Shown here one piece after another: positions 2,998 to 62,390 of a DNA stretch of 64,000 nucleotides (the first letter of the stretch is position 1; every line of letters begins with the position of its first letter). The stretch covers positions 1 to 64,000 of IMG/VR virus record IMGVR_UViG_3300003322_000571. The stretch is one strand, 5' to 3'. Both the position numbers and the translations under genes were made by a program. Below the pieces are notes generated by a model that saw nothing but the letters and a program-made list of their open reading frames with translations, did no database searches and had not been told where the DNA came from.

Positions 2998-3286
2998 CAA
3001 AGTGAGCTTTGAAGGTTAGTAACCGAGACACCCTTCTTTATGACACTTAAACTGCTGACAAAGTCGATAAATTCCTTCTCAGGATGTGCAGTTGTCAAGG
3101 TTCACCCCCAAACAGTCTCAGTCCTGCTAATGACTGAGTGGTGGAGGCCGTAACTGTGAAATCAGTTTGCGCCCTACGGTTGCAGAGGACGTCTTTCTCT
3201 GAAAGTCACTGGAAAGAGCTTGCTCGCCGGTTAAAGTGACATACGTCGTGATAACCTATTCGACGAACAATTTAAAGGGGTTTGAT

Positions 3287-4836: not shown

Positions 4837-4938
4837 AGGTCCATGGTGTAACGGCAGCATTCCGGTCTCCTAAGTGCTTGCTCTAATGAGCATTTAGGAA
4901 AACCGTCGGTCGCGGTTCGAATCCGTGTGGACCTGCCA
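4837..4938 (+). tRNA. tRNA-Trp(CCA) with a 28-nt hairpin insertion in the anticodon (4871-4898)
   Basis: AGGTCCA/TGGACCT-G-CCA; removing the insert restores CGGT-CT-CCA-AA-ACCG. Confidence 0.8.
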
Positions 4939-8456: not shown

Positions 8457-8780
8457 ATGATTAATGCAGATGTTGCAGCGTTTGATGCTGCAGTTGCGGC
8501 TGGGAAGCCGGTTGTTGTTGACTTTTGGGCACCTTGGTGCGGGCCTTGCAAGATGGTCGGTCCGGTGTTTGAAGAAATCGCTGGTGAGCGTTCTGAACAG
8601 GCAACGTTCTTGAAGGTCAACGTTGATGCTGAGCCTGAACTCGCTCAGAAGTTCAAGGTCCGTGGCATTCCGACGATTGTCGTTGCAAAGGACGGTGAGA
8701 CAGTTGCCTCGATTACTGGTGCACAGCCAAAGGCGAAGCTCGATCAGTTCATTGCTCAAAACCTTGGACCTGTTGCTTAA
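8457..8780 (+). CDS. trxA: thioredoxin
   Basis: VVVDFWAPWCGPCK. Confidence 0.95.
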   Translation: MINADVAAFDAAVAAGKPVVVDFWAPWCGPCKMVGPVFEEIAGERSEQATFLKVNVDAEPELAQKFKVRGIPTIVVAKDGETVASITGAQPKAKLDQFIAQNLGPVA

Positions 8781-22736: not shown

Positions 22737-22951
22737 TGGAACTAAAGGTACGAGCAATTGTCCGTGTTAAGCGAGCAAACGTCGAGTTTGCTCCAGGACT
22801 TGGAATTGGTGTCCTTGCAACACAAGAGTTCAAAGTTCAAGTGCCGTTGGGTCGAACTGTGACCGATCACAGAGTTTCAGCTTGCATTCATGATGTTGGA
22901 CAAGCATTGCTTGACGATAGTGTAGAAGTAATCTACGAGGAAGTGAAATGA
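22736..22951 (+). CDS. hypothetical protein
   Basis: Translationally coupled ORF. Confidence 0.6.
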
Positions 22952-24021
22952 AAATCTACCTTGTCGGCGGTGCAGTTCGCGATATCCTTCTTGGTCTTGA
23001 GCCGAAGGATCGTGACTACGTCGTTGTTGGTGCAACTCCTGAAGATATGCTCGCTAAGGGCTTTTCGAAAGTTGGTGCATCGTTTCCTGTGTTCCTTCAT
23101 CCTGAAACTGGTGAAGAGTACGCTCTTGCACGTACCGAACGGAAGACGGGCGTTGGTTACAACGGGTTTGACGTGACGTTCGATACGTCTATCACTCTGG
23201 AAGATGACCTTCGTCGTCGTGATCTGACGATCAATTCAATGGCAATGGACCTCGAAACGAACGAGATCATTGATCCGTTCGGTGGTCAAAGTGATCTCAA
23301 GCGAAAGATCCTCCGTCATACAAGTGAAGCGTTTGCTGAGGATCCGGTTCGTGTTCTTCGTACTGCTCGGTTCGCAGCTCGGTACGGGTTTGATGTGTCA
23401 GAAACGACACTGGAGCTGATGGAACAGGTCGCTCCAGAACTTGACCATGTTCCTGCGGAACGAATCTTCGCCGAGTTCCAGAAGGGCTTGATGGAGAAAG
23501 CTCCGTACAGGATGCTTGGTGTACTGGTACAGTGCTACGCTGACAACGTTAAGTCGGTTGAACCATTTCTTCGTGGTGATCATGATCTGTGGCAACGTCT
23601 GCACCTTGTTCGAGATGATACGCCGTTGCATGTTCGGTTTGCTCTGATCGCTCGTCGCTTCCACCCGGAAGATTACGAAGCGTGCAAGATTCCTACAGAC
23701 CTTGCACGAGTGGCGAAAGCAGTTCAGTCGCACTTCTATCAATGGAAGGGACTTCGTACTTGCTCTGATGAACGGTTCGTTAAGATGTGTGACAGATACC
23801 GTGCTTTCAGCAACCCGGACTTCTTCCAGCAAGTGCTCGATGTATTTGAATTCATTGAACATCCGTACGCGATCAAAGGTGTATGGCGTGAACCTATCAA
23901 CGAACGTCTGGCGTTGGCAACGAGCATCGATGCTGCAACAATTGTTGCTAGTCTGCCGATTAAAGACGGCAAGTTGATTCAGGCGAAGATTCACGAAGCA
24001 CGTCTTGCCGCAATGAAGTAA
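22948..24021 (+). CDS. cca: tRNA nucleotidyltransferase (CCA-adding enzyme)
   Basis: [40 protein letters not shown]. Confidence 0.95.
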
Positions 24022-33129: not shown

Positions 33130-33516
33130 ATGCATATGAAGCACGTTGCAATTATCGTTGGGGGTTACCATGATTTCGATTATAATGACTACAATTCTGT
33201 TACTAAGCTGATCGCTTCTTCGATCACTGAATGGACAGAAGTGTCCGATGAACAGTTCGAACTGTTGAAGCGTGCTCAATCATATGATTATCACAATCGT
33301 TTTACCTTGATTGAACGTCCTGTTGACGAACCAGCATATGTTCGTAAGACAGTTGACGATTATGTCAAGTGGGCTAAGGCTGAAGAAGACAAGAAAGCTA
33401 AAGAAAAGCAAAAGGCCGCTGAGGCAGCCCTAGCTAAGAAGCTCAAGCGTGAAGCGAAGACGCTTGCTGATAAGCGAAAGCTACTCGACAAGCTAAAGGA
33501 AGAGCTTGGCGAATAA
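33130..33516 (+). CDS. hypothetical protein with a Lys-rich coiled coil
   Basis: AAGGAG RBS. Confidence 0.7.
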   Translation: MHMKHVAIIVGGYHDFDYNDYNSVTKLIASSITEWTEVSDEQFELLKRAQSYDYHNRFTLIERPVDEPAYVRKTVDDYVKWAKAEEDKKAKEKQKAAEAALAKKLKREAKTLADKRKLLDKLKEELGE

Positions 33517-33520
33517 ACAA

Positions 33521-33599
33521 GGGTTCTGTGTTGATGCTGGTTGACTGCTTGCCTTCGGGGGCAGTCAACGCCCGGGTACAAGTCCTGGAGAATCCACCA
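33521..33599 (+). ncRNA. tmRNA tRNA-like-domain mimic (G3:U70, A73, UUCG-capped stem)
   Basis: GGGTTCT/AGAATCC-ACCA; no D-stem; long GTTGACTGC/GCAGTCAAC helix; T-arm CCGGG-TACAAGT-CCTGG. Confidence 0.7.
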
Positions 33600-33603
33600 A
33601 ATT

Positions 33604-33675
33604 GGGACGTTGGCAGAATGGTTATGCACCGGACTCTTAATCCGACTTATCCGAGTTCGATCCTCGGGCGTCCTA
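33604..33675 (+). tRNA. tRNA-Lys(CTT)
   Basis: CGGA-CTCTTAA-TCCG. Confidence 0.9.
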
Positions 33676-33699
33676 CAGTTTAAGGTAATATTGTTTTAT

Positions 33700-33774
33700 G
33701 GGAGTATGGCGTAGCTGGAAACGTACTAGGCTCTTACCCTTGTGTCCACGGTTCGAATCCGTGTGCTCCCACCA
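33700..33774 (+). tRNA. tRNA-Lys(CTT), variant
   Basis: AGG-CTCTTAC-CCT; CCA. Confidence 0.85.
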
Positions 33775-33790
33775 ACTTTGAAAGGATTAG

Positions 33791-34024
33791 ATGACTCTAC
33801 CTTCAACATATCAGATCGGTGACGTAGTACTATACCTTCCGTACGAGATGCGTGAGGATGATCACGTGATTCATATTCGCGCTACGATCGTTGCTGTAAC
33901 GTTTACAAAAGCGAAAGTGTTCTATGACATTGTATTTGAGTTGGAAGGTACAGAGTATCTGAAGCAACGAGTAGATTCAGCTTTTGTGCTGAATGACAGC
34001 ACAAATGTTCGTGTGGTTCATTAA
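33791..34024 (+). CDS. hypothetical protein
   Basis: AAGGA RBS. Confidence 0.65.
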   Translation: MTLPSTYQIGDVVLYLPYEMREDDHVIHIRATIVAVTFTKAKVFYDIVFELEGTEYLKQRVDSAFVLNDSTNVRVVH

Positions 34025-34127
34025 CCTAATCGGTTGACGATAAGTTGTGTGCTGAACTGAATAAATGCGTTGTTGTAAGGTACACGATCGACTACTATCA
34101 ACGGTAGTATACTCTAGAGATTAAATT

Positions 34128-34200
34128 GCCCAGCGGTGTGGCTGGTGAAACTACCTCTCTTACAAAGAGGATTTGCGGGGTTCGAAACCCTGGCTGGGCA
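34128..34200 (+). tRNA. tRNA-Val(TAC), divergent D-arm
   Basis: CCTCT-CTTACAA-AGAGG. Confidence 0.8.
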
Positions 34201-34256
34201 CAGTAACCTAATACGTTGTGAAACAATTAGGTTAACATTAAAATACTTCAAACAAT

Positions 34257-34330
34257 TCCCGGTTAGTTCAATGGCAGAACATCGTGCTGATAACGCGGAG
34301 ACACAGGATCGTAACCTGTACTGGGAACCA
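34257..34330 (+). tRNA. tRNA-Ile(GAT)
   Basis: Loop CT-GAT-AA; CCA. Confidence 0.85.
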
Positions 34331-34343
34331 ATAGGAGACTGAT

Positions 34344-34820
34344 ATGCCTTGGCCTGATGCAATGGATGGCGACATGGACGATTACTATTATGGTCCTATT
34401 GGGCCTGCTGGTCGAATCGGAGGTGGCGCAGATCAACAGTATGCGGAACGATATTCGCATGACAATTCTGCACGTTCATCGCCTTTGTATCAGTTCAATA
34501 GCTTAGAAGAGCTTGTCACTTCTGAAGTGTTCCAGCAACAGCTAGGAATGGCGCTTGAATGCAAGAACAAGCAAATTGCTGAGCTTCGCCAAGAATTGAT
34601 CGACAAACACCCAGGACATCCTAGTACTGAAGCGGTGTTTGATCAGTGGGAATGGATTCAGCAAAACCAGTCGAAGTCGTTCTGGTCGTTTGGATACAAC
34701 ATGATTCGTAAGAATTATTGTTATAGTGGGTTTGGTACGTACGGATTTGGATTTCCATCGTATTACCACGCATATGCTGCAGCAAACAGGTACGAAGCAC
34801 CTGAAAGTGCTGCAGATTGA
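34344..34820 (+). CDS. hypothetical protein
   Basis: AGGAG RBS. Confidence 0.65.
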   Translation: MPWPDAMDGDMDDYYYGPIGPAGRIGGGADQQYAERYSHDNSARSSPLYQFNSLEELVTSEVFQQQLGMALECKNKQIAELRQELIDKHPGHPSTEAVFDQWEWIQQNQSKSFWSFGYNMIRKNYCYSGFGTYGFGFPSYYHAYAAANRYEAPESAAD

Positions 34821-34826
34821 TAGTCT

Positions 34827-34901
34827 GGTGGGGTAGCTCAGAGGCAGAGCAATCGGTCGATAACCGATAGGTCGAGATTTCGAAATTCTCTCTCACCACC
34901 A
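34827..34901 (+). tRNA. tRNA-Ile(GAT), with an unusual C33
   Basis: ATCGG-TCGATAA-CCGAT; CCA. Confidence 0.85.
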
Positions 34902-34911
34902 AATAGTCACT

Positions 34912-34986
34912 GCTCCGTAAACATTGACGGTGATGCCTGGTTTTGTAGTCCAGTTGAAGGCGGTTCGAATCCGTCACGGAGCACCA
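34912..34986 (+). tRNA. tRNA-Thr(TGT)
   Basis: GCTCCGT/ACGGAGC; loop TT-TGT-AG. Confidence 0.8.
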
Positions 34987-34988
34987 AT

Positions 34989-35067
34989 CCTCGTGTTAAG
35001 CGCCCTTGTGCACAGGGTAGCCAATAGGTATGGACAATGTTACTTTCGACGGTAACCACGGGGGCCA
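34989..35067 (+). ncRNA. D-arm-less tRNA-like RNA
   Basis: CCTCGTG/CACGGGG-GCCA; three internal hairpins including a TTCGA loop. Confidence 0.5.
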
Positions 35068-35085
35068 AATAACAAGGGAGCAACC

Positions 35086-35283
35086 ATGATCACATTTAGC
35101 GAACTGCGTAAATCGTACAAGTATTTCAAGAACGAGCTTCAGACGAACGACAAGGCAAAGATTTTCAATGCGATGGTGACAGATTTCACCGCCAGTGATC
35201 AAATCAACCCGTTCGACTATGCTGAAGTTGGTCACTTCTATGTGCGTGTTTCGCTGTACCGCCTGATCGCCTGGTTGTACTAA
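35086..35283 (+). CDS. hypothetical protein
   Basis: GGAG RBS. Confidence 0.6.
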   Translation: MITFSELRKSYKYFKNELQTNDKAKIFNAMVTDFTASDQINPFDYAEVGHFYVRVSLYRLIAWLY

Positions 35284-35290
35284 CAAGAAT

Positions 35291-35369
35291 TTGCGGCTGC
35301 GTAGCAACACGGTTACTTCTTTGACTCTTAATCAAAACCATAACACCGTTAGCGATTTTATCTCCGCAA
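35291..35369 (+). ncRNA. Y RNA-like RNA 5: minimal, displaying a tRNA-Lys(CTT) anticodon arm
   Basis: GCGGCTGCGTAG...GGTTACTTC-[TTTGA-CTCTTAA-TCAAA]...TTTATCTCCGC. Confidence 0.72.
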
Positions 35370-35388
35370 CTTAATTTCTGGACTGACA

Positions 35389-35856
35389 ATGAATCAGTAT
35401 GTCACTGGCGTTCTTGATAACGACGCTAAAGGAACCACAGGTGTCGGCACTATCTTCTTCGTCGATGTAACACTCGACGGAATTAAGACAAGGCATACGT
35501 GGGGACTGGTTGAACAAATTCAAGGGAAGTTCGATCTAGACGCTGTCGTCGCTCCTGTTCGCGAACGTTTGAAAGCAGCTGCTTCTGCACAGAAGGCAGC
35601 TGAAGAACAAGCGAAGAAGGAAAAGATGGAGCAGCGTGAAGCAAGCGTTGTAGTTGATGACGTACTGGCTTCACTTGTCAAGACAGTACTGAACGATTCG
35701 GGAAGCGCAAAAGCGATTTCTGAGTACAAGTCGGGCAAGGAAAAAGCACTGAATGCACTCGTCGGATCTGTGATCAAGCAGATCAGGACCCAGAAGTTGA
35801 ATGTCAGCTTCGATGCATTCACAATCAACAGAGCTCTGCAAGCACAACTTGCATGA
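35389..35856 (+). CDS. protein with a C-terminal GatB/YqeY tail domain
   Basis: EYKSGKEKALNALVGSVIK. Confidence 0.65.
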   Translation: MNQYVTGVLDNDAKGTTGVGTIFFVDVTLDGIKTRHTWGLVEQIQGKFDLDAVVAPVRERLKAAASAQKAAEEQAKKEKMEQREASVVVDDVLASLVKTVLNDSGSAKAISEYKSGKEKALNALVGSVIKQIRTQKLNVSFDAFTINRALQAQLA

Positions 35857-35862
35857 GTCAAT

Positions 35863-35935
35863 TCCGGTGTAGCTCAGAGGTAGTAGCAACTGACTGTTAA
35901 TCAGTGGGTCGGAGGTTCGATCCCTTCCACCGGAG
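35863..35935 (+). tRNA. tRNA-Asn(GTT)
   Basis: ACTGA-CTGTTAA-TCAGT. Confidence 0.92.
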
Positions 35936-35953
35936 CAAATTTAGGAGTGTCAG

Positions 35954-36145
35954 ATGTTCGCATTGACCAAAGAACAGAGTGAAAAGCTGAACGAATGGGC
36001 CAAGGCCCTGAAGAACGGGCCTACAGGTGCTATCGGTGGTCGCTTCACATACAGTTTCACGCCAACGAGTCTTGGTACAATCGTCAAAGTCAAATGTGGC
36101 TTGACGAATGAAGAAGTTGATCTGACGGATTATCAGGACTGGTAA
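35954..36145 (+). CDS. conserved-type phage hypothetical protein
   Basis: GAIGGRFTYSFTPTSLG. Confidence 0.7.
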   Translation: MFALTKEQSEKLNEWAKALKNGPTGAIGGRFTYSFTPTSLGTIVKVKCGLTNEEVDLTDYQDW

Positions 36146-36146
36146 T

Positions 36147-36644
36147 ATGCTAGACTATCTGTACGACGTTGAAGACCGCATTCACGAACTGTTATCGCAT
36201 CCCGAACTATGGAATGATCTTCTCGTTACTTACGAGAAGCCGACCGTAGAACGTCTGTGGATGCAAGACGGCGAGAACCGAATTTACCTGCACAGGATTC
36301 ACACGTGCAATCCAGGTGAAGCGTACTATCACAAGCATCCGTGGCCTTCCGCAATGCGTGTTGTTTCAGGAACGTACGAGATGCAAGTTGGGCTAATGAT
36401 GCCTGGCAATACGGAGCCAACAACGGCTGCAAAGCTTCGTTTGGATCATGGATCTACATACGAGATGACCAACTCTGAAGCAATGCATTCTGTGCGACCT
36501 CTTGCATACGAAACTTTGTCGCTGATGGTAACTGGTCCTCGCTGGACTATTAGTGATTCAGCCGCAAAGCTTGATAACGGTCGACTGACACAGGATCAAC
36601 GAGATAGGTTGTTTGCAGATTTTCTGGACTACTATCTTTGGTAA
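36147..36644 (+). CDS. cupin-like protein
   Basis: HKHPW, GTYE, HSV. Confidence 0.6.
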   Translation: MLDYLYDVEDRIHELLSHPELWNDLLVTYEKPTVERLWMQDGENRIYLHRIHTCNPGEAYYHKHPWPSAMRVVSGTYEMQVGLMMPGNTEPTTAAKLRLDHGSTYEMTNSEAMHSVRPLAYETLSLMVTGPRWTISDSAAKLDNGRLTQDQRDRLFADFLDYYLW

Positions 36645-36649
36645 AAATT

Positions 36650-36718
36650 GGGCTGCCCGCTGGGGCGGAGGGATCCCTTGCAAGGATCTCGGGACGGGTT
36701 CGATCCCCGTGCGGTCCA
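36650..36718 (+). tRNA. tRNA-Ala(TGC), short D-arm
   Basis: G3:U70; GATCC-CTTGCAA-GGATC. Confidence 0.8.
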
Positions 36719-36723
36719 CATAT

Positions 36724-36783
36724 GAGCTTGATGTTGATGCAACCTGCATGCGGAGAGCGGTACGAGTCCGCATAGGTTCACCA
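36724..36783 (+). ncRNA. mini tRNA-like RNA (G3:U70, ACCA end) related to 33521-33599
   Basis: GAGCTTG/TAGGTTC-ACCA; shared TGTTGATGC and TAC(A/G)AGT T-loop. Confidence 0.55.
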
Positions 36784-37613: not shown

Positions 37614-37684
37614 GGGATGCAAACTTTAAGGTGAAGTACCTGGCTTTTAACCAGGAAAACAGGGGTCAGTACCCTGGCGTCCTA
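37614..37684 (+). tRNA. tRNA-Lys(TTT), atypical T-loop
   Basis: CCTGG-CTTTTAA-CCAGG. Confidence 0.8.
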
Positions 37685-39005: not shown

Positions 39006-39079
39006 GGGGGCGGAGTGTTTACGGGATAGCACGTTACTCTTGCACGGTTTCAGATCGAGTTCAAGCCTCGACGCCTCCA
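39006..39079 (+). tRNA. tRNA-Ala(TGC), divergent
   Basis: GGGGGCG/CGCCTCC with G3:U70; loop CT-TGC-AC. Confidence 0.75.
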
Positions 39080-39102
39080 CAAACTTCTAGACGAGAATAG
39101 AC

Positions 39103-40276: not shown

Positions 40277-40349
40277 GGGGGATTAGCTCAGCTGGGAGAG
40301 CGACGGATTTGCAATTCGTAGGTCAGGAGTTCGATCCTCCTATCCTCCA
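40277..40349 (+). tRNA. tRNA-Ala(TGC)
   Basis: Canonical; G3:U70. Confidence 0.93.
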
Positions 40350-40541
40350 CAAAGAAAGTAACGTATGGTACTGACATTTACATTGGCGTGGTGGATGATT
40401 CCACTAGCGGTTGCAGTAATCGGAACGTTGTTCATGCCAACAGGTTCAGGTGGCTTTGTAGTAGGGCTACTGTGCTGGTTTGCAGCGATTTGTATCGTAT
40501 TAGGTCGTTATGTCGGCCTGTGGTTCGGTTGAACATTTTAT

Positions 40542-47238: not shown

Positions 47239-47919
47239 ATGAAGTACATCGTTGAAGTTCATGCCGCTGAGGGCGGTGACGATAGCAAGTTGTTCGTGAA
47301 GGACCTTGCGCAAGCATACACGAAGTTGTTCCAGCGTTTTGGCTGAAAGCACCGGGTTGTTGTAGAGAAGGACGGCGAAATTCACATTGAAGTGAGTGGC
47401 TCTGATCTATCACAGCTCAACAATGAACCCGGTGGCCATAGGCTTCAACGAATTCCTCCCACGGAAAAACGTGGAAGAGTTCATACGTCCACTGTTACTG
47501 TCGCTGTAATCGATACAGATAGCTATGCGACACCTGATTTTACTCAGATTGATCCTAGTGATTTCAAGATTGAGTGGTACTCAGGAACAGGTGCAGGTGG
47601 ACAGCACCGTAATAAACATCAGAACAGTATCCGACTTACACACGTACCTACGGGGTTAGTTGAGACGTCTCAGTGCCGGAGCCGGGAGGCTTCTCACAAA
47701 GAGGCGATGAGTCAGATGGTGAAGCGGTTGCAGAGCAATGCAAGTTACCAGCGTGTAGTAGCTCAATCAATTGAGCGTAAGCGTCAAATGGGAACAGGTA
47801 TGCGAGGTGACAAAATTCGTACATATCGCTTCCAAGATGATGTTGCCACAGACAACCGTACAGGTAAGAAGGTCAACCTTTCAAAAGTAATGAACGGACA
47901 ATTCGACCTTCTTTGGTAA
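47239..47919 (+). CDS. class-I release factor (RF1-like PxT motif, lacking domain 1) with an in-frame TGA at codon 36
   Basis: EVHAAEGGDDSKLF...FG*K; EPGGHRLQRIPPTEKRGRVHTS; GAGGQHRNK; KIRTY. Confidence 0.9.
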
Positions 47920-60449: not shown

Positions 60450-61172
60450 ATGTACATCATCTACAAACACACTTGTACTGCCACTGGTAAAAGTTATGTT
60501 GGACAAACCAAAGAACTAACTAAGCGTACAAACGCACACAAGAGTTCAAGGTCGGGGTGCGTTGCGTTCAGGAACGCCATTAGCTGCTACGGGTGGGAGT
60601 CATTTGTCACGGTTGAGTTGGCTTGTTGCACGACGGTTGGAGACGCCAACGTTGTAGAGAGCTTGTTGATATCCGAATACAACACCATAGCACCCAGTGG
60701 ATATAACTTAACAAGTGGTGGCAAAGCATGTCAGATCAGCGAATTGACCAAGCGGAAAATTTCTGAGTCACTGAAAGGTAGGCCGAAGCCTCCCCGGACA
60801 TCATCTCACATAGAAAATCTGGCTGCACGGCGTCGAGGAAAGTCGTATGAGGAGTTATACGGCGTTGAACGAGCCAAAGAGTTAAAGAAAAACAAAGGGC
60901 ACGCGTTTGATGAGTACCATTCACAGCGACGAGGAAAAGGGTTTAACGACTTGTTTGGTGAAGACAAAGCCGCAGAGATACGCGCAAAGATGTCGAGGAC
61001 TAGGTTGACCAAAATTCCCGAATCAACCCAAGTGTTGATAGAAACAACATACGATCGTGACAAGTGTGTGACAAAAACGTTTGCGGAATCAATCGGGTTG
61101 ACAGTATACATTGTAGTTAGATATTTGAAGGACATCGGTAAATGGAATCCAAAGCAGCTCCCAAGCAGGTAA
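60450..61172 (+). CDS. GIY-YIG homing endonuclease
   Basis: IIY..T...GKSYVGQT, GYNLTSGG, NUMOD3-like repeat. Confidence 0.9.
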   Translation: MYIIYKHTCTATGKSYVGQTKELTKRTNAHKSSRSGCVAFRNAISCYGWESFVTVELACCTTVGDANVVESLLISEYNTIAPSGYNLTSGGKACQISELTKRKISESLKGRPKPPRTSSHIENLAARRRGKSYEELYGVERAKELKKNKGHAFDEYHSQRRGKGFNDLFGEDKAAEIRAKMSRTRLTKIPESTQVLIETTYDRDKCVTKTFAESIGLTVYIVVRYLKDIGKWNPKQLPSR

Positions 61173-61558
61173 TCGTAATGAGACGCGATCTGAAGATGCC
61201 GCGAGGAAAGATTGCGGCACAGGCAGCACATGCTTCAATGGCAGGCCTTCTCAACCATGTTACCTTCCGTCTTGAGGAAGACACGATGGAGGGATGGGCG
61301 TTGTCGATGCCGAAGAATGGTGCGATGTCACAGTGGTTGCGTGGCGCTTTCACCAAGGTTTGCGTTTGCGTTGAGAGTGAAGCTGAACTTGAGGCTGTGT
61401 ACAAGCAAGCTCAATTGGCTGGCCTCAACGTGTCAAAGATTGTCGATAACGGTTTGACTGTATTCGACAACGTTCCCACTTGGACGTGCATCGGTGTGGG
61501 GCCGGACTTCCCTGAGCGAATTGATCCAATCACTGGCCATTTGAAACTATACAATTGA
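61142..61558 (+). CDS. pth2: peptidyl-tRNA hydrolase Pth2
   Basis: KQVIVMRRDLKM..GKIAAQAAHA, IVDNGLT, IGVGP, ITGHLKLY. Confidence 0.93.
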   Translation: MESKAAPKQVIVMRRDLKMPRGKIAAQAAHASMAGLLNHVTFRLEEDTMEGWALSMPKNGAMSQWLRGAFTKVCVCVESEAELEAVYKQAQLAGLNVSKIVDNGLTVFDNVPTWTCIGVGPDFPERIDPITGHLKLYN

Positions 61559-62206: not shown

Positions 62207-62284
62207 TGGACTTGCATTGCGATTGGTCCAGACTTCCCTGAGAAGATCGATCCGATCACTCGTCAACTCAAGTTGTACAACTAA
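62207..62284 (+). pseudogene. orphaned original C-terminus of Pth2
   Basis: WTCIAIGPDFPEKIDPITRQLKLYN* versus WTCIGVGPDFPERIDPITGHLKLYN*. Confidence 0.9.
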
Positions 62285-62292
62285 GTACACCT

Positions 62293-62390
62293 GCCAGCGT
62301 TTCTAATATTGGCCTTAGGGGTGCCCTTATAAAGCACTAAGACCCGTCTAGATCAGGCGGTTAATGTGGGTTCGATTCCCATCGCTGGTA
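62293..62390 (+). tRNA. tRNA-Ile(TAT)-like with a long variable arm
   Basis: GCCAGCG/CGCTGGT; loop CT-TAT-AA; extra arm of about 28 nt. Confidence 0.7.

Follow-up and report, generated by a model that had tools for sequence, protein, structure and literature searches.

The closest described counterparts in layout of the RNAs analyzed here are the tRNA-like domains of tmRNA. This domain is defined by a D loop without a stem, with SmpB taking the place of the anticodon and D stems (PMC3968760). Forms reduced to the tRNA-like domain alone (CDS-less tmRNAs) are known from mycobacteriophage DS6A, and similar CDS-less tmRNAs are reported from Mallomonadaceae plastids and from a mitochondrial group (PMC4131195, PMC11915505). 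A molecule similar to that of DS6A inhibits tmRNA in E. coli (PMC4131195, PMC11915505). A second point of comparison is tRNA-Ala and the alanine minihelix substrates of AlaRS (papers cited in PMC9976931), for which the bacterial acceptor-stem identity set is A73, G2-C71, G3.U70, and G4-C69 (PMC9976931). A third is the non-proteinogenic tRNA-Gly of Staphylococcus, which donate glycine to cell wall synthesis. These are extra tRNA-like copies with altered elbow and T-stem features that keep synthetase identity but are diverted from decoding. However, they keep a full cloverleaf and an anticodon and serve known Fem transferases.

Two anticodon-less RNA elements in a phage tRNA array

We analyzed a 64,000-nucleotide stretch (the window) of a giant soil/root phage, IMG/VR record IMGVR_UViG_3300003322_000571. 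A preliminary description, made from the sequence alone, had noted two mini tmRNA-like RNAs here with alanine identity and neither anticodon nor message. We confirmed this observation by reading and folding both elements, named E1 and E2. Their parts are as follows.

33521-33599, + strand: E1, a 79-nt tRNA-like RNA gene of the long-helix type, 4 nt after the stop codon of ORF 33130-33516 and 4 nt before tRNA-Lys(CUU) at 33604
33521-33527, + strand: E1 acceptor stem, 5' strand (GGGUUCU), pairing with 33589-33595, with G3 at 33523
33528-33539, + strand: E1 unpaired 12-nt D region (GUGUUGAUGCUG), containing UGUUGAUGC
33540-33569, + strand: E1 third arm, an 11-bp helix with a small internal loop and a C(UUCG)G apex, with no 7-nt anticodon loop, containing a putative CUUGC remnant of a tRNA-Ala anticodon loop
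33572-33588, + strand: E1 T arm, a 5-bp stem (CCGGG/CCUGG) and the 7-nt loop UACAAGU, with A where tRNAs and tmRNA have U55
33589-33599, + strand: E1 acceptor stem, 3' strand (AGAAUCC, U70 at 33593), A73 (33596), and the encoded CCA (33597-33599)
36724-36783, + strand: E2, a 60-nt short paralog, 4 nt after the atypical tRNA-Ala(UGC) at 36650-36719
36724-36730 with 36773-36779: E2 acceptor stem (GAGCUUG/UAGGUUC), with G3:U70 at 36726 and 36777
36732-36740: E2 D motif, the same UGUUGAUGC, which can form a mini hairpin (GUUG-AUG-CAAC) at 36733-36743
36744-36756: E2 residual center, where the central arm is almost gone
36757-36771: E2 T arm, a 4-bp stem and the loop UACGAGU
36780 and 36781-36783: E2 A73 and CCA

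The E1 acceptor pairs are G1-C, G2-C, G3-U, U-A, U-A, C-G, and U-A. The minimum-free-energy fold of E1 is exactly the structure listed above (-33.1 kcal/mol, z -2.36). E2 on its own does not fold better than shuffled sequences (z -0.30), and so its structure rests on comparison with a homolog of the same subtype and on a covariance model, both described below. The two shared motifs, UGUUGAUGC and UACRAGU, occur at this spacing twice in the window, against 0.00 expected from 100 shuffles. Neither element was called by ARAGORN or by any Rfam model, including tRNA and tmRNA, at gathering score or at E<=10.

Conservation and covariation

We found three homologs in the tRNA arrays of other phage contigs, for a total of five members in four contigs (E1, E2, and one each in contigs L062, L078, and L079). 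The L062 homolog (8489-8569) occupies the same position as E1, upstream of tRNA-Lys(CUU). The L079 homolog (3066-3138) is of the E2 subtype but has a full 8-9-bp third arm. A covariance model built from the family alignment A2 (R2) scored the members at 60 to 93 bits (E1, 93.2; E2, 60.4), with the next best hit at 22 bits and ordinary tRNAs at 22 bits or less. R2 can find these genes, which tRNA and tmRNA finders miss.

The family shows a covarying three-way fold. In the alignment of the five members, 97.5% of cells are paired and 12 of 17 pairs show compensatory changes, a result reached by 0 of 500 shuffles, while slid controls gave 29 to 65% paired. All 7 acceptor pairs are standard in 5/5 members and 4 of the 7 show compensatory changes, as do 3 of the 5 T-stem pairs, and the outer 5 pairs of the third arm all covary. 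The 9-nt D motif UGUUGAUGC and the 11-nt T motif GGUACRAGUCC are invariant in 5/5 members. The family is small, however, and two of its members were found with a pattern that fixed the two loops and CCA.

The elements could in principle be decaying tRNA-Ala pseudogenes, the null hypothesis set out in the preliminary description, which would predict a lack of conservation. Three observations fit this reading: the weak fold of E2, the absence of E1 from the relatives G004 and L059, and the presence of four other tRNA-Ala genes in the phage, two of them atypical. Against it, in addition to the compensatory changes, E1 and the L062 homolog are identical over all 49 nt outside the third helix, while the helix itself has diverged (20/32 identical) and still pairs. 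Orthologous tRNAs of the same two phages are 87 to 96% identical, and a shared ORF is 65% identical at the DNA level. Both subtypes also recur in distant phage contigs with intact stems, G3:U70, and CCA, and the divergent helices, acceptors, and flanks exclude that the four contigs are recent copies of one another. The elements are thus conserved and are not decaying pseudogenes; we regard this rival as very unlikely.

It is also conceivable that the elements are only processing punctuation, i.e., tRNA-shaped signals at which RNase P and the 3' trimming enzymes cut the long array transcripts, releasing an RNA with no job. Consistent with this, they lie 4 to 6 nt from neighboring tRNAs or from an ORF end, on the same strand as the array, and the acceptor/T-arm stack and the CCA are what bacterial RNase P reads. 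However, a processing signal does not need G3:U70 and A73 in 5/5 members while the rest of the stem changes, nor D and T motifs that stay invariant between phages sharing only 25 to 38% protein identity (the window phage and L078), and neighboring true tRNAs already provide cut sites. We consider this explanation unlikely.

Comparison with tmRNA and tRNA-Ala

The E1 type (E1 and the L062 and L078 homologs) has the layout of a tmRNA tRNA-like domain: 12 single-stranded nt in the D region, one helix, 2 nt, and the T arm. The E2 type (E2 and the L079 homolog) can also be drawn with a 4-bp mini D hairpin with a triloop. G3:U70, A73, and a 3' CCA are present in 5/5 members. The phage has its own two-piece tmRNA (G000, the phage genome, about 304537-304906, minus strand), which also has G3:U70, A73, and CCA, a 12-nt single-stranded D region, a helix leaving the junction at the same place, and a T arm of 5 bp with a 7-nt loop. 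The E family differs from it in lacking an mRNA-like domain and pseudoknots, as the RNAs are 60 to 81 nt in total and the third arm is a closed hairpin, and in its D-loop and T-loop sequences.

The outline matches, but the sequence does not. No tmRNA-clan family of Rfam gave a hit at E<=10 on any of the five members, whereas the same search found the phage's own tmRNA at 126.3 bits and the DS6A element, which we located at L081:28478-28560 (L081 being the DS6A contig), at 43.2 bits (E 6.5e-14). The DS6A element resembles the E family in being phage-encoded and about 80 nt long, with a G-U at 3:70 of the acceptor stem, a stemless D region, one helix closed by a loop, a T arm, no tag reading frame, and no anticodon. 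It differs in having a canonical GUUCGAUUC T loop and a GG-containing D loop, and it ends in CUA rather than CCA in the genome; the E family has UACRAGU and UGUUGAUGC loops instead, appears to descend from tRNA-Ala, and sits in tRNA arrays. The E family D loop lacks the tmRNA GG...UUCGAC signature, and its T arm departs from the tmRNA GGUUCGAnUCC, with A55 instead of U55. This argues against a role with SmpB, as D-loop/T-loop contacts are needed for SmpB binding (PMC3968760).

The RNAs are likewise not canonical tRNAs. The third arm ends in UUCG, UCC, or a 4-7-nt loop without U33, or is nearly absent, and there is no normal D arm. The canonical elbow, in which G18G19 of the D loop pairs with U55/C56 of a UUCRANN T loop, is absent, as the T loop is UACRAGU and UGUUGAUGC has no GG. 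ARAGORN made no call, and Rfam tRNA gave no hit at E<=10 on any member. Of the bacterial alanine identity set, A73 and G3.U70 are present in 5/5 members, G2-C71 in 4/5, and G4-C69 in 0/5, while pairs 4 to 7 vary. The major determinants are present and the minor one is absent. The acceptor/T-arm coaxial stack is the part AlaRS studies have used in minihelix form. CCA is encoded in E1, E2, and the L062 homolog, but in only 17 of the phage's 56 tRNA genes and in none of its four tRNA-Ala genes.

Several sequence links point to descent from a phage tRNA-Ala. The acceptor of the L078 homolog is identical (7/7) to that of tRNA-Ala(UGC) of the relative G004. GUGUUGA also begins the D arm of the tRNA-Ala of phage XacN1, and a near copy begins the window tRNA-Ala at 39006. 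The best nonmember hits of R2 in the window are the tRNA-Ala genes at 39006 and 36650, and a UUGC remnant points the same way.

Proposed origin and possible functions

E1 and E2 are best explained as two paralogous genes of a small, conserved family of tRNA-like RNAs in the tRNA arrays of a clade of XacN1-related giant phages, though we hold this explanation as a whole only tentatively. The analysis itself establishes the covarying fold, with a third helix of free sequence and length, the invariant loops, the invariant G3:U70, A73, and CCA, and the lack of an anticodon loop. The remainder is inference from sequence: that the RNAs arose from a phage tRNA-Ala(UGC) whose D stem and anticodon loop were lost; that, in the absence of expression data (no RNA run was listed), they are transcribed with the neighboring tRNAs and cut out by RNase P and the 3' trimming enzymes; that host AlaRS charges them with alanine through the acceptor-stem identity set, which we consider likely; that they cannot read a codon; and any binding to SmpB or EF-Tu or role in ribosome rescue.

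The preliminary description had interpreted the RNAs as codon-independent alanine donors or SmpB/EF-Tu decoys for ribosome rescue, perhaps working with the Pth2 and release factor of the window. This interpretation is partly supported. The conserved alanine identity marks and the E1-type layout agree with it, and the genes it mentioned are real, with an RF1-domain ORF (an RF1 fragment) at 47392-47919 and a Pth2 ORF at 61142-61558. A detectable relationship to tmRNA is not supported, and the phage has no smpB. Its own complete tmRNA needs host SmpB, which argues against a pure SmpB-decoy role.

Our leading guess, possible but more likely wrong than right, is that the RNAs act as a tmRNA tRNA-like domain acts. 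The stemless D region and T-loop elbow would bind a protein that fills the place of the anticodon arm, with host SmpB as the obvious candidate, and EF-Tu would carry the alanyl-RNA to ribosomes with an empty decoding site. There, it would either give one alanine to the stalled chain or compete with tmRNA, and the product could then be released by the phage's RF1-like protein and Pth2. In this view, giant phages would have built, from one of their own tRNA-Ala genes, an independent analog of the tRNA-like domain, a codon-independent alanyl-RNA with a private elbow (A55 plus UGUUGAUGC) that would enter or block ribosomes with an empty decoding site, giving tag-less, one-alanine rescue or control of host trans-translation beside the phage's own tmRNA, RF1 fragment, and Pth2. 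The DS6A precedent and the rescue theme of the phage genome are consistent with this. However, an SmpB-binding mimic would compete with the phage's own tmRNA, and E2, with almost no third arm and three G-U pairs in its acceptor, may be a weakened copy. In addition, the two closest relatives with this region, G004 and L059, have an ordinary tRNA-Lys at the place of E1, so the RNA is dispensable within the clade.

The tRNA arrays of giant phages are usually read as codon-usage tuning. Here, the arrays carry a conserved RNA that keeps only the predicted chargeable half of tRNA-Ala and, by inference, cannot decode, so the phage would invest in an alanyl-RNA for something other than reading codons. 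If it acts like a tmRNA tRNA-like domain, it would be a second, independent origin of that design and a minimal natural substrate for studying how anticodon-less RNAs enter the ribosome. If it acts elsewhere, it points to an unknown partner: a transferase, a defense target, or a regulator.

This last alternative, which we hold to be possible but doubtful, is that the RNAs are charged or uncharged alanine tRNA mimics working away from the ribosome. They could donate alanine to a transferase that is not yet recognized, or they could be an uncleavable decoy or sponge for a protein that binds the acceptor/T-arm half of tRNA-Ala, such as AlaRS, EF-Tu, or a host tRNA-targeting defense enzyme. The phage genome, which does encode a CCA-adding enzyme, has no AlaRS, no FemAB-type transferase, and no aminoacyl-phosphatidylglycerol synthase domain, and no protein was found to travel with the RNA in the four contigs. 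No defense system aimed at tRNA-Ala acceptor stems is known to us, and a sponge for AlaRS or EF-Tu would also hurt phage translation. In favor of this alternative, the elbow departs from both tRNA and tmRNA, with A55 and no GG in the D region, as expected of an RNA kept away from normal translation, and the changes in the non-proteinogenic tRNA-Gly of Staphylococcus are comparable. Also in its favor, the function sits in the acceptor/T-arm half plus the unusual elbow, while the third arm is free to vary in sequence and length, down to almost nothing in E2.

The giant-phage context of E1 and E2

We first placed the two elements in the genome that carries them. The window is the first 64 kb of the virus record, which spans 350,089 bp with terminal repeats. 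The large terminase is 47% identical to that of Xanthomonas phage XacN1 and slightly less identical to those of Xoo-sp13, Stenotrophomonas RAS14/CM1, Ralstonia RsoM2USA, and Agrobacterium Atu_ph07, placing this phage among the giant myoviruses of the XacN1 group. ARAGORN finds 30 tRNA genes in the window and 56 in the whole genome. Among sequencing runs, the region is held by two DNA metagenomes, one from root and one from soil, and no RNA run was listed; the root metagenome may be the source of the sequence, and the soil metagenome holds a near relative, whose contigs end 20 nt before E1.

We next examined the sequence and predicted fold of each element, which are as follows.

33521-33599 (+), E1: a 7-bp acceptor with G3:U70, A73, and CCA; 12 unpaired nt; an 11-bp helix capped by C(UUCG)G; 2 nt; and a 5-bp T stem with the loop UACAAGU.
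36724-36783 (+), E2: the acceptor GAGCUUG/UAGGUUC, again with G3:U70, followed by A73 and CCA; the same UGUUGAUGC motif; the T loop UACGAGU; and a center reduced to about a dozen nt.
33530-33549, within E1: a tandem near-repeat of 10 nt (GUUGAUGCUG then GUUGACUGCU).

The structure of E1 is also its minimum-free-energy and centroid fold (-33.1 kcal/mol, z -2.36), whereas E2 alone folds no better than shuffles (z -0.30). Due to the tandem near-repeat, either copy could pair with the 3' strand UCAAC of the long helix of E1. The two shared motifs at this spacing occur twice in the window, against none in 100 shuffles. ARAGORN, Rfam at gathering score, and Rfam at E<=10 report nothing at either place. 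Thus, the preliminary description of two small alanine-identity RNAs without an anticodon was accurate in its observations.

Conservation and covariation of a phage RNA family

To determine whether the elements are conserved, we searched for homologues by several routes. Megablast and blastn searches of GenBank phages returned no close DNA relative, and searches of IMG/VR with the small flanking ORFs returned no relatives. The large terminase (TerL) led to four IMG/VR relatives, of which only one, G004 (terminase 76% identical), covers the tRNA region, and it has a tRNA-Lys(CUU) exactly where E1 lies. In XacN1, Xoo-sp13, RAS14, RsoM2USA, and Atu_ph07, searches with model R1 found only ordinary tRNAs, at 31 bits or less. 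Motif scans of IMG/VR and of one genome for each of 185,579 prokaryote species gave only chance matches, as judged by inspecting the matches for stems. However, a neighboring ORF led to a Logan contig, L062, which carries a clear E1 homologue between tRNA-Asn and tRNA-Lys(CUU), in the same position as in the window. A motif scan of JGI metagenomes gave 18 matches, of which two, on contigs L078 and L079, are real members, and both sit inside dense phage tRNA arrays. L078 also carries a GOLLD RNA (L078:11288-11743, minus strand; Rfam RF02032, 199 bits), which overlaps what ARAGORN calls a tRNA-Pyl(CUA). The family is therefore rare and, so far, found only in phages.

We built a covariance model (R2) from the five sequences, and it scores them at 93, 89, 89, 77, and 60 bits, while the next best hit in 94 kb is an ordinary tRNA at 22 bits. 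On the alignment, 97.5% of cells form standard pairs, against 29-65% when partners are slid by 1-3 columns. Twelve of 17 pairs have compensatory changes, and none of 500 shuffles reaches these values. In the acceptor stem, pairs 2, 4, 6, and 7 change on both sides and pair 5 changes on one side, but pair 1 stays G-C and pair 3 stays G-U in all five members. E1 and its L062 homologue are identical over all 49 nt outside the third helix, while the helix is 20/32 identical and still pairs; for comparison, orthologous tRNAs of the same two phages are 87-96% identical and a shared ORF is 65% identical at the DNA level. L078 comes from a phage whose shared proteins are only 25-38% identical to those of the window, yet both loop motifs are unchanged. 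This rules out the null hypothesis raised in the preliminary description, that these are decaying tRNA-Ala pseudogenes.

The family has two subtypes, and the window phage has one of each. The E1 type (E1, L062, and L078) has GUGUUGAUGCUG as an unpaired D region, then a long helix with an apex of the form GCC-UYCG-G, then 2 nt, then a 5-bp T stem. The alternative pairing allowed by the near-repeat in E1 is possible in L062 but not in L078. The E2 type (E2 and L079) has AUGUUGAUGCAAC, which can draw a 4-bp hairpin with a triloop, followed by a third arm, AGA, and a 4-bp T stem flanked by an A-A mismatch. The third arm is 8-9 bp with a small loop in L079 and nearly absent in E2. UGUUGAUGC, GGUACRAGUCC, G3:U70, A73, and CCA are invariant in all five members. 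The T loop is a canonical UUCRANN loop except for A at position 55, and the D motif has no GG; therefore, the usual G18-U55 and G19-C56 elbow cannot form as in tRNA or tmRNA. The third arm varies freely in sequence, length, and loop, so nothing in it is read as an anticodon.

Origin and relationship to tmRNA

Comparison with phage tRNA genes points to a phage tRNA-Ala(UGC) ancestor. The phage has four tRNA-Ala(UGC) genes, and none encodes CCA.

36650-36719: tRNA-Ala(UGC) with a 4-nt D loop, which fails Rfam tRNA.
39006-39080: tRNA-Ala(UGC) with a GUGUUUACGGG D arm like XacN1 tRNA-Ala.
40277-40350: tRNA-Ala(UGC).
184171-184243 of the whole genome (G000): tRNA-Ala(UGC).

The L078 acceptor (GGGCUUA/UAGGUCC) is identical to that of tRNA-Ala(UGC) in G004. 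GUGUUGA starts the atypical D arm of XacN1 tRNA-Ala, and GUGUUUA starts that of the tRNA-Ala at 39006. The best nonmember hits of R2 in the window are the tRNA-Ala genes at 39006 and 36650. E1 and L062 keep UUGC, the core of the alanine anticodon loop, buried in the helix just before the capping hairpin. This descent is inferred rather than proven. We considered whether the helix of E1 hides a spliceable insert, but rejected this because removing it does not restore a 7-nt alanine anticodon loop. A different tRNA-like gene in the window (4837-4938, plus strand) does pair a perfect anticodon-loop sequence, CUCCUAA (Arg CCU), with a 28-nt insert, in the way a small intron masks an anticodon. It scores 41 bits on Rfam tRNA but is not called by ARAGORN, has a third arm of 16 bp (4 + 12 bp), ends in GCCA, and has a fold with z -3.5. 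ARAGORN also misses two weaker Rfam tRNA hits, at 62293-62390 (+) (32 bits, with a long extra arm and a 9-nt loop) and 37615-37683 (+) (30 bits, with a noncanonical T loop).

The RNAs resemble tmRNA by layout but not by sequence. [quoted passage not shown] E1 has this topology, and its single-stranded D region is 12 nt long, like that of the phage's own tmRNA. As a positive control, we located the published tRNA-like-domain-only tmRNA of mycobacteriophage DS6A (PMC4131195), which is unannotated in its GenBank record (JN698994; L081:28478-28560, plus strand), lies between gp33 and gp34, and ends in CUA rather than CCA. Rfam tmRNA scores it 43.2 bits (E 6.5e-14). The window phage also encodes a complete two-piece (permuted) tmRNA (G000:C1 about 304537-304906, minus strand; L100:1037-1406), which scores 126.3 bits on Rfam beta_tmRNA (gathering score 84) and 112.5 bits on tmRNA_permuted. 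ARAGORN reads its tag as ANEGNFRLAA, and its betaproteobacterial type hints at the host. The same searches give no tmRNA hit at E<=10 on any of the five members. We therefore do not classify them as tmRNA; they resemble a tRNA-like domain by convergence. Kinship with bacterial Y RNAs and with plant-virus tRNA-like ends was also rejected, because those lack a free acceptor stem formed by both RNA ends inside a tRNA array. The closest analogue is the DS6A tRNA-like-domain-only tmRNA, from which the family differs in descent and in both elbow loops. We could not find this conserved family of anticodon-less, alanine-identity tRNA-like RNAs in giant-phage tRNA arrays described, and standard tools miss it.

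Possible functions of the alanine-identity RNAs

The conservation, covarying fold, and invariant loops and acceptor features are established by our analysis; the tRNA-Ala descent, processing, and alanylation are inferred, and SmpB binding and any action on ribosomes are conjectural. G3:U70 with A73 is the major alanine identity set, and AlaRS charges such acceptor/T-arm minihelices. The strict retention of a G-U pair while its neighbors change argues that charging is selected, and we consider alanylation likely. The genes encode CCA, unlike 39 of the phage's 56 tRNA genes (only 17 encode it). They lie 4-6 nt from their neighbors on the array strand, which fits tRNA-type processing, although a role purely as processing punctuation seems unlikely.

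An alanyl-RNA that cannot decode has one known use: entry into ribosomes with an empty A site together with SmpB. A tRNA-like-domain-only molecule inhibits tmRNA in E. coli (PMC4131195, PMC11915505). In addition to its tmRNA, the phage shows a ribosome-rescue theme in the following genes.

47392-47919 (+): a 175-aa ORF matching only the C-terminal half of release factor 1 (profile positions 168-333 of 347, E 1e-45), far below the full-length cutoff and so a truncated RF1-like protein.
61142-61558 (+): a 138-aa peptidyl-tRNA hydrolase of the archaeal/eukaryotic Pth2 type (TIGR00283, 93.6 bits, above its cutoff); a short second PTH2-like fragment lies at 62207-62278.
22948-24021 (+): a CCA-adding enzyme (E 1e-95).

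However, the D and T loops are not those that SmpB is known to need, the phage has no smpB, its own tmRNA would have to share host SmpB with the mimic, and relatives do without E1. Thus, action like a tRNA-like domain is only a tentative reading. The preliminary description had proposed codon-independent alanine donors or SmpB/EF-Tu decoys for ribosome rescue, perhaps working with Pth2 and the release factor, and our results bear out this interpretation only in part.

Use of the RNAs with another partner, as a transferase substrate, sponge, or decoy, is possible to a similar, limited degree. We looked for partners that would support a nonribosomal use and found none: the genome has no FemAB, no aminoacyl-phosphatidylglycerol synthase domain, and no AlaRS, and no protein co-occurs with the RNA in the four contigs that carry it. 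A 155-aa ORF with the tRNA-binding GatB/YqeY tail domain (35389-35856, plus strand) lies between E1 and E2 but was not found in the other contigs with the RNA. The 165-aa ORF next to E2 (36147-36644, plus strand) has no Pfam or NCBIfam match. Its family is widespread, also occurs in cellular genomes, and is no marker for the RNA; it has 60 or more homologues at 37-55% identity that occur in phage contigs and also in a cellular contig (L104) near a ribosomal-protein operon.
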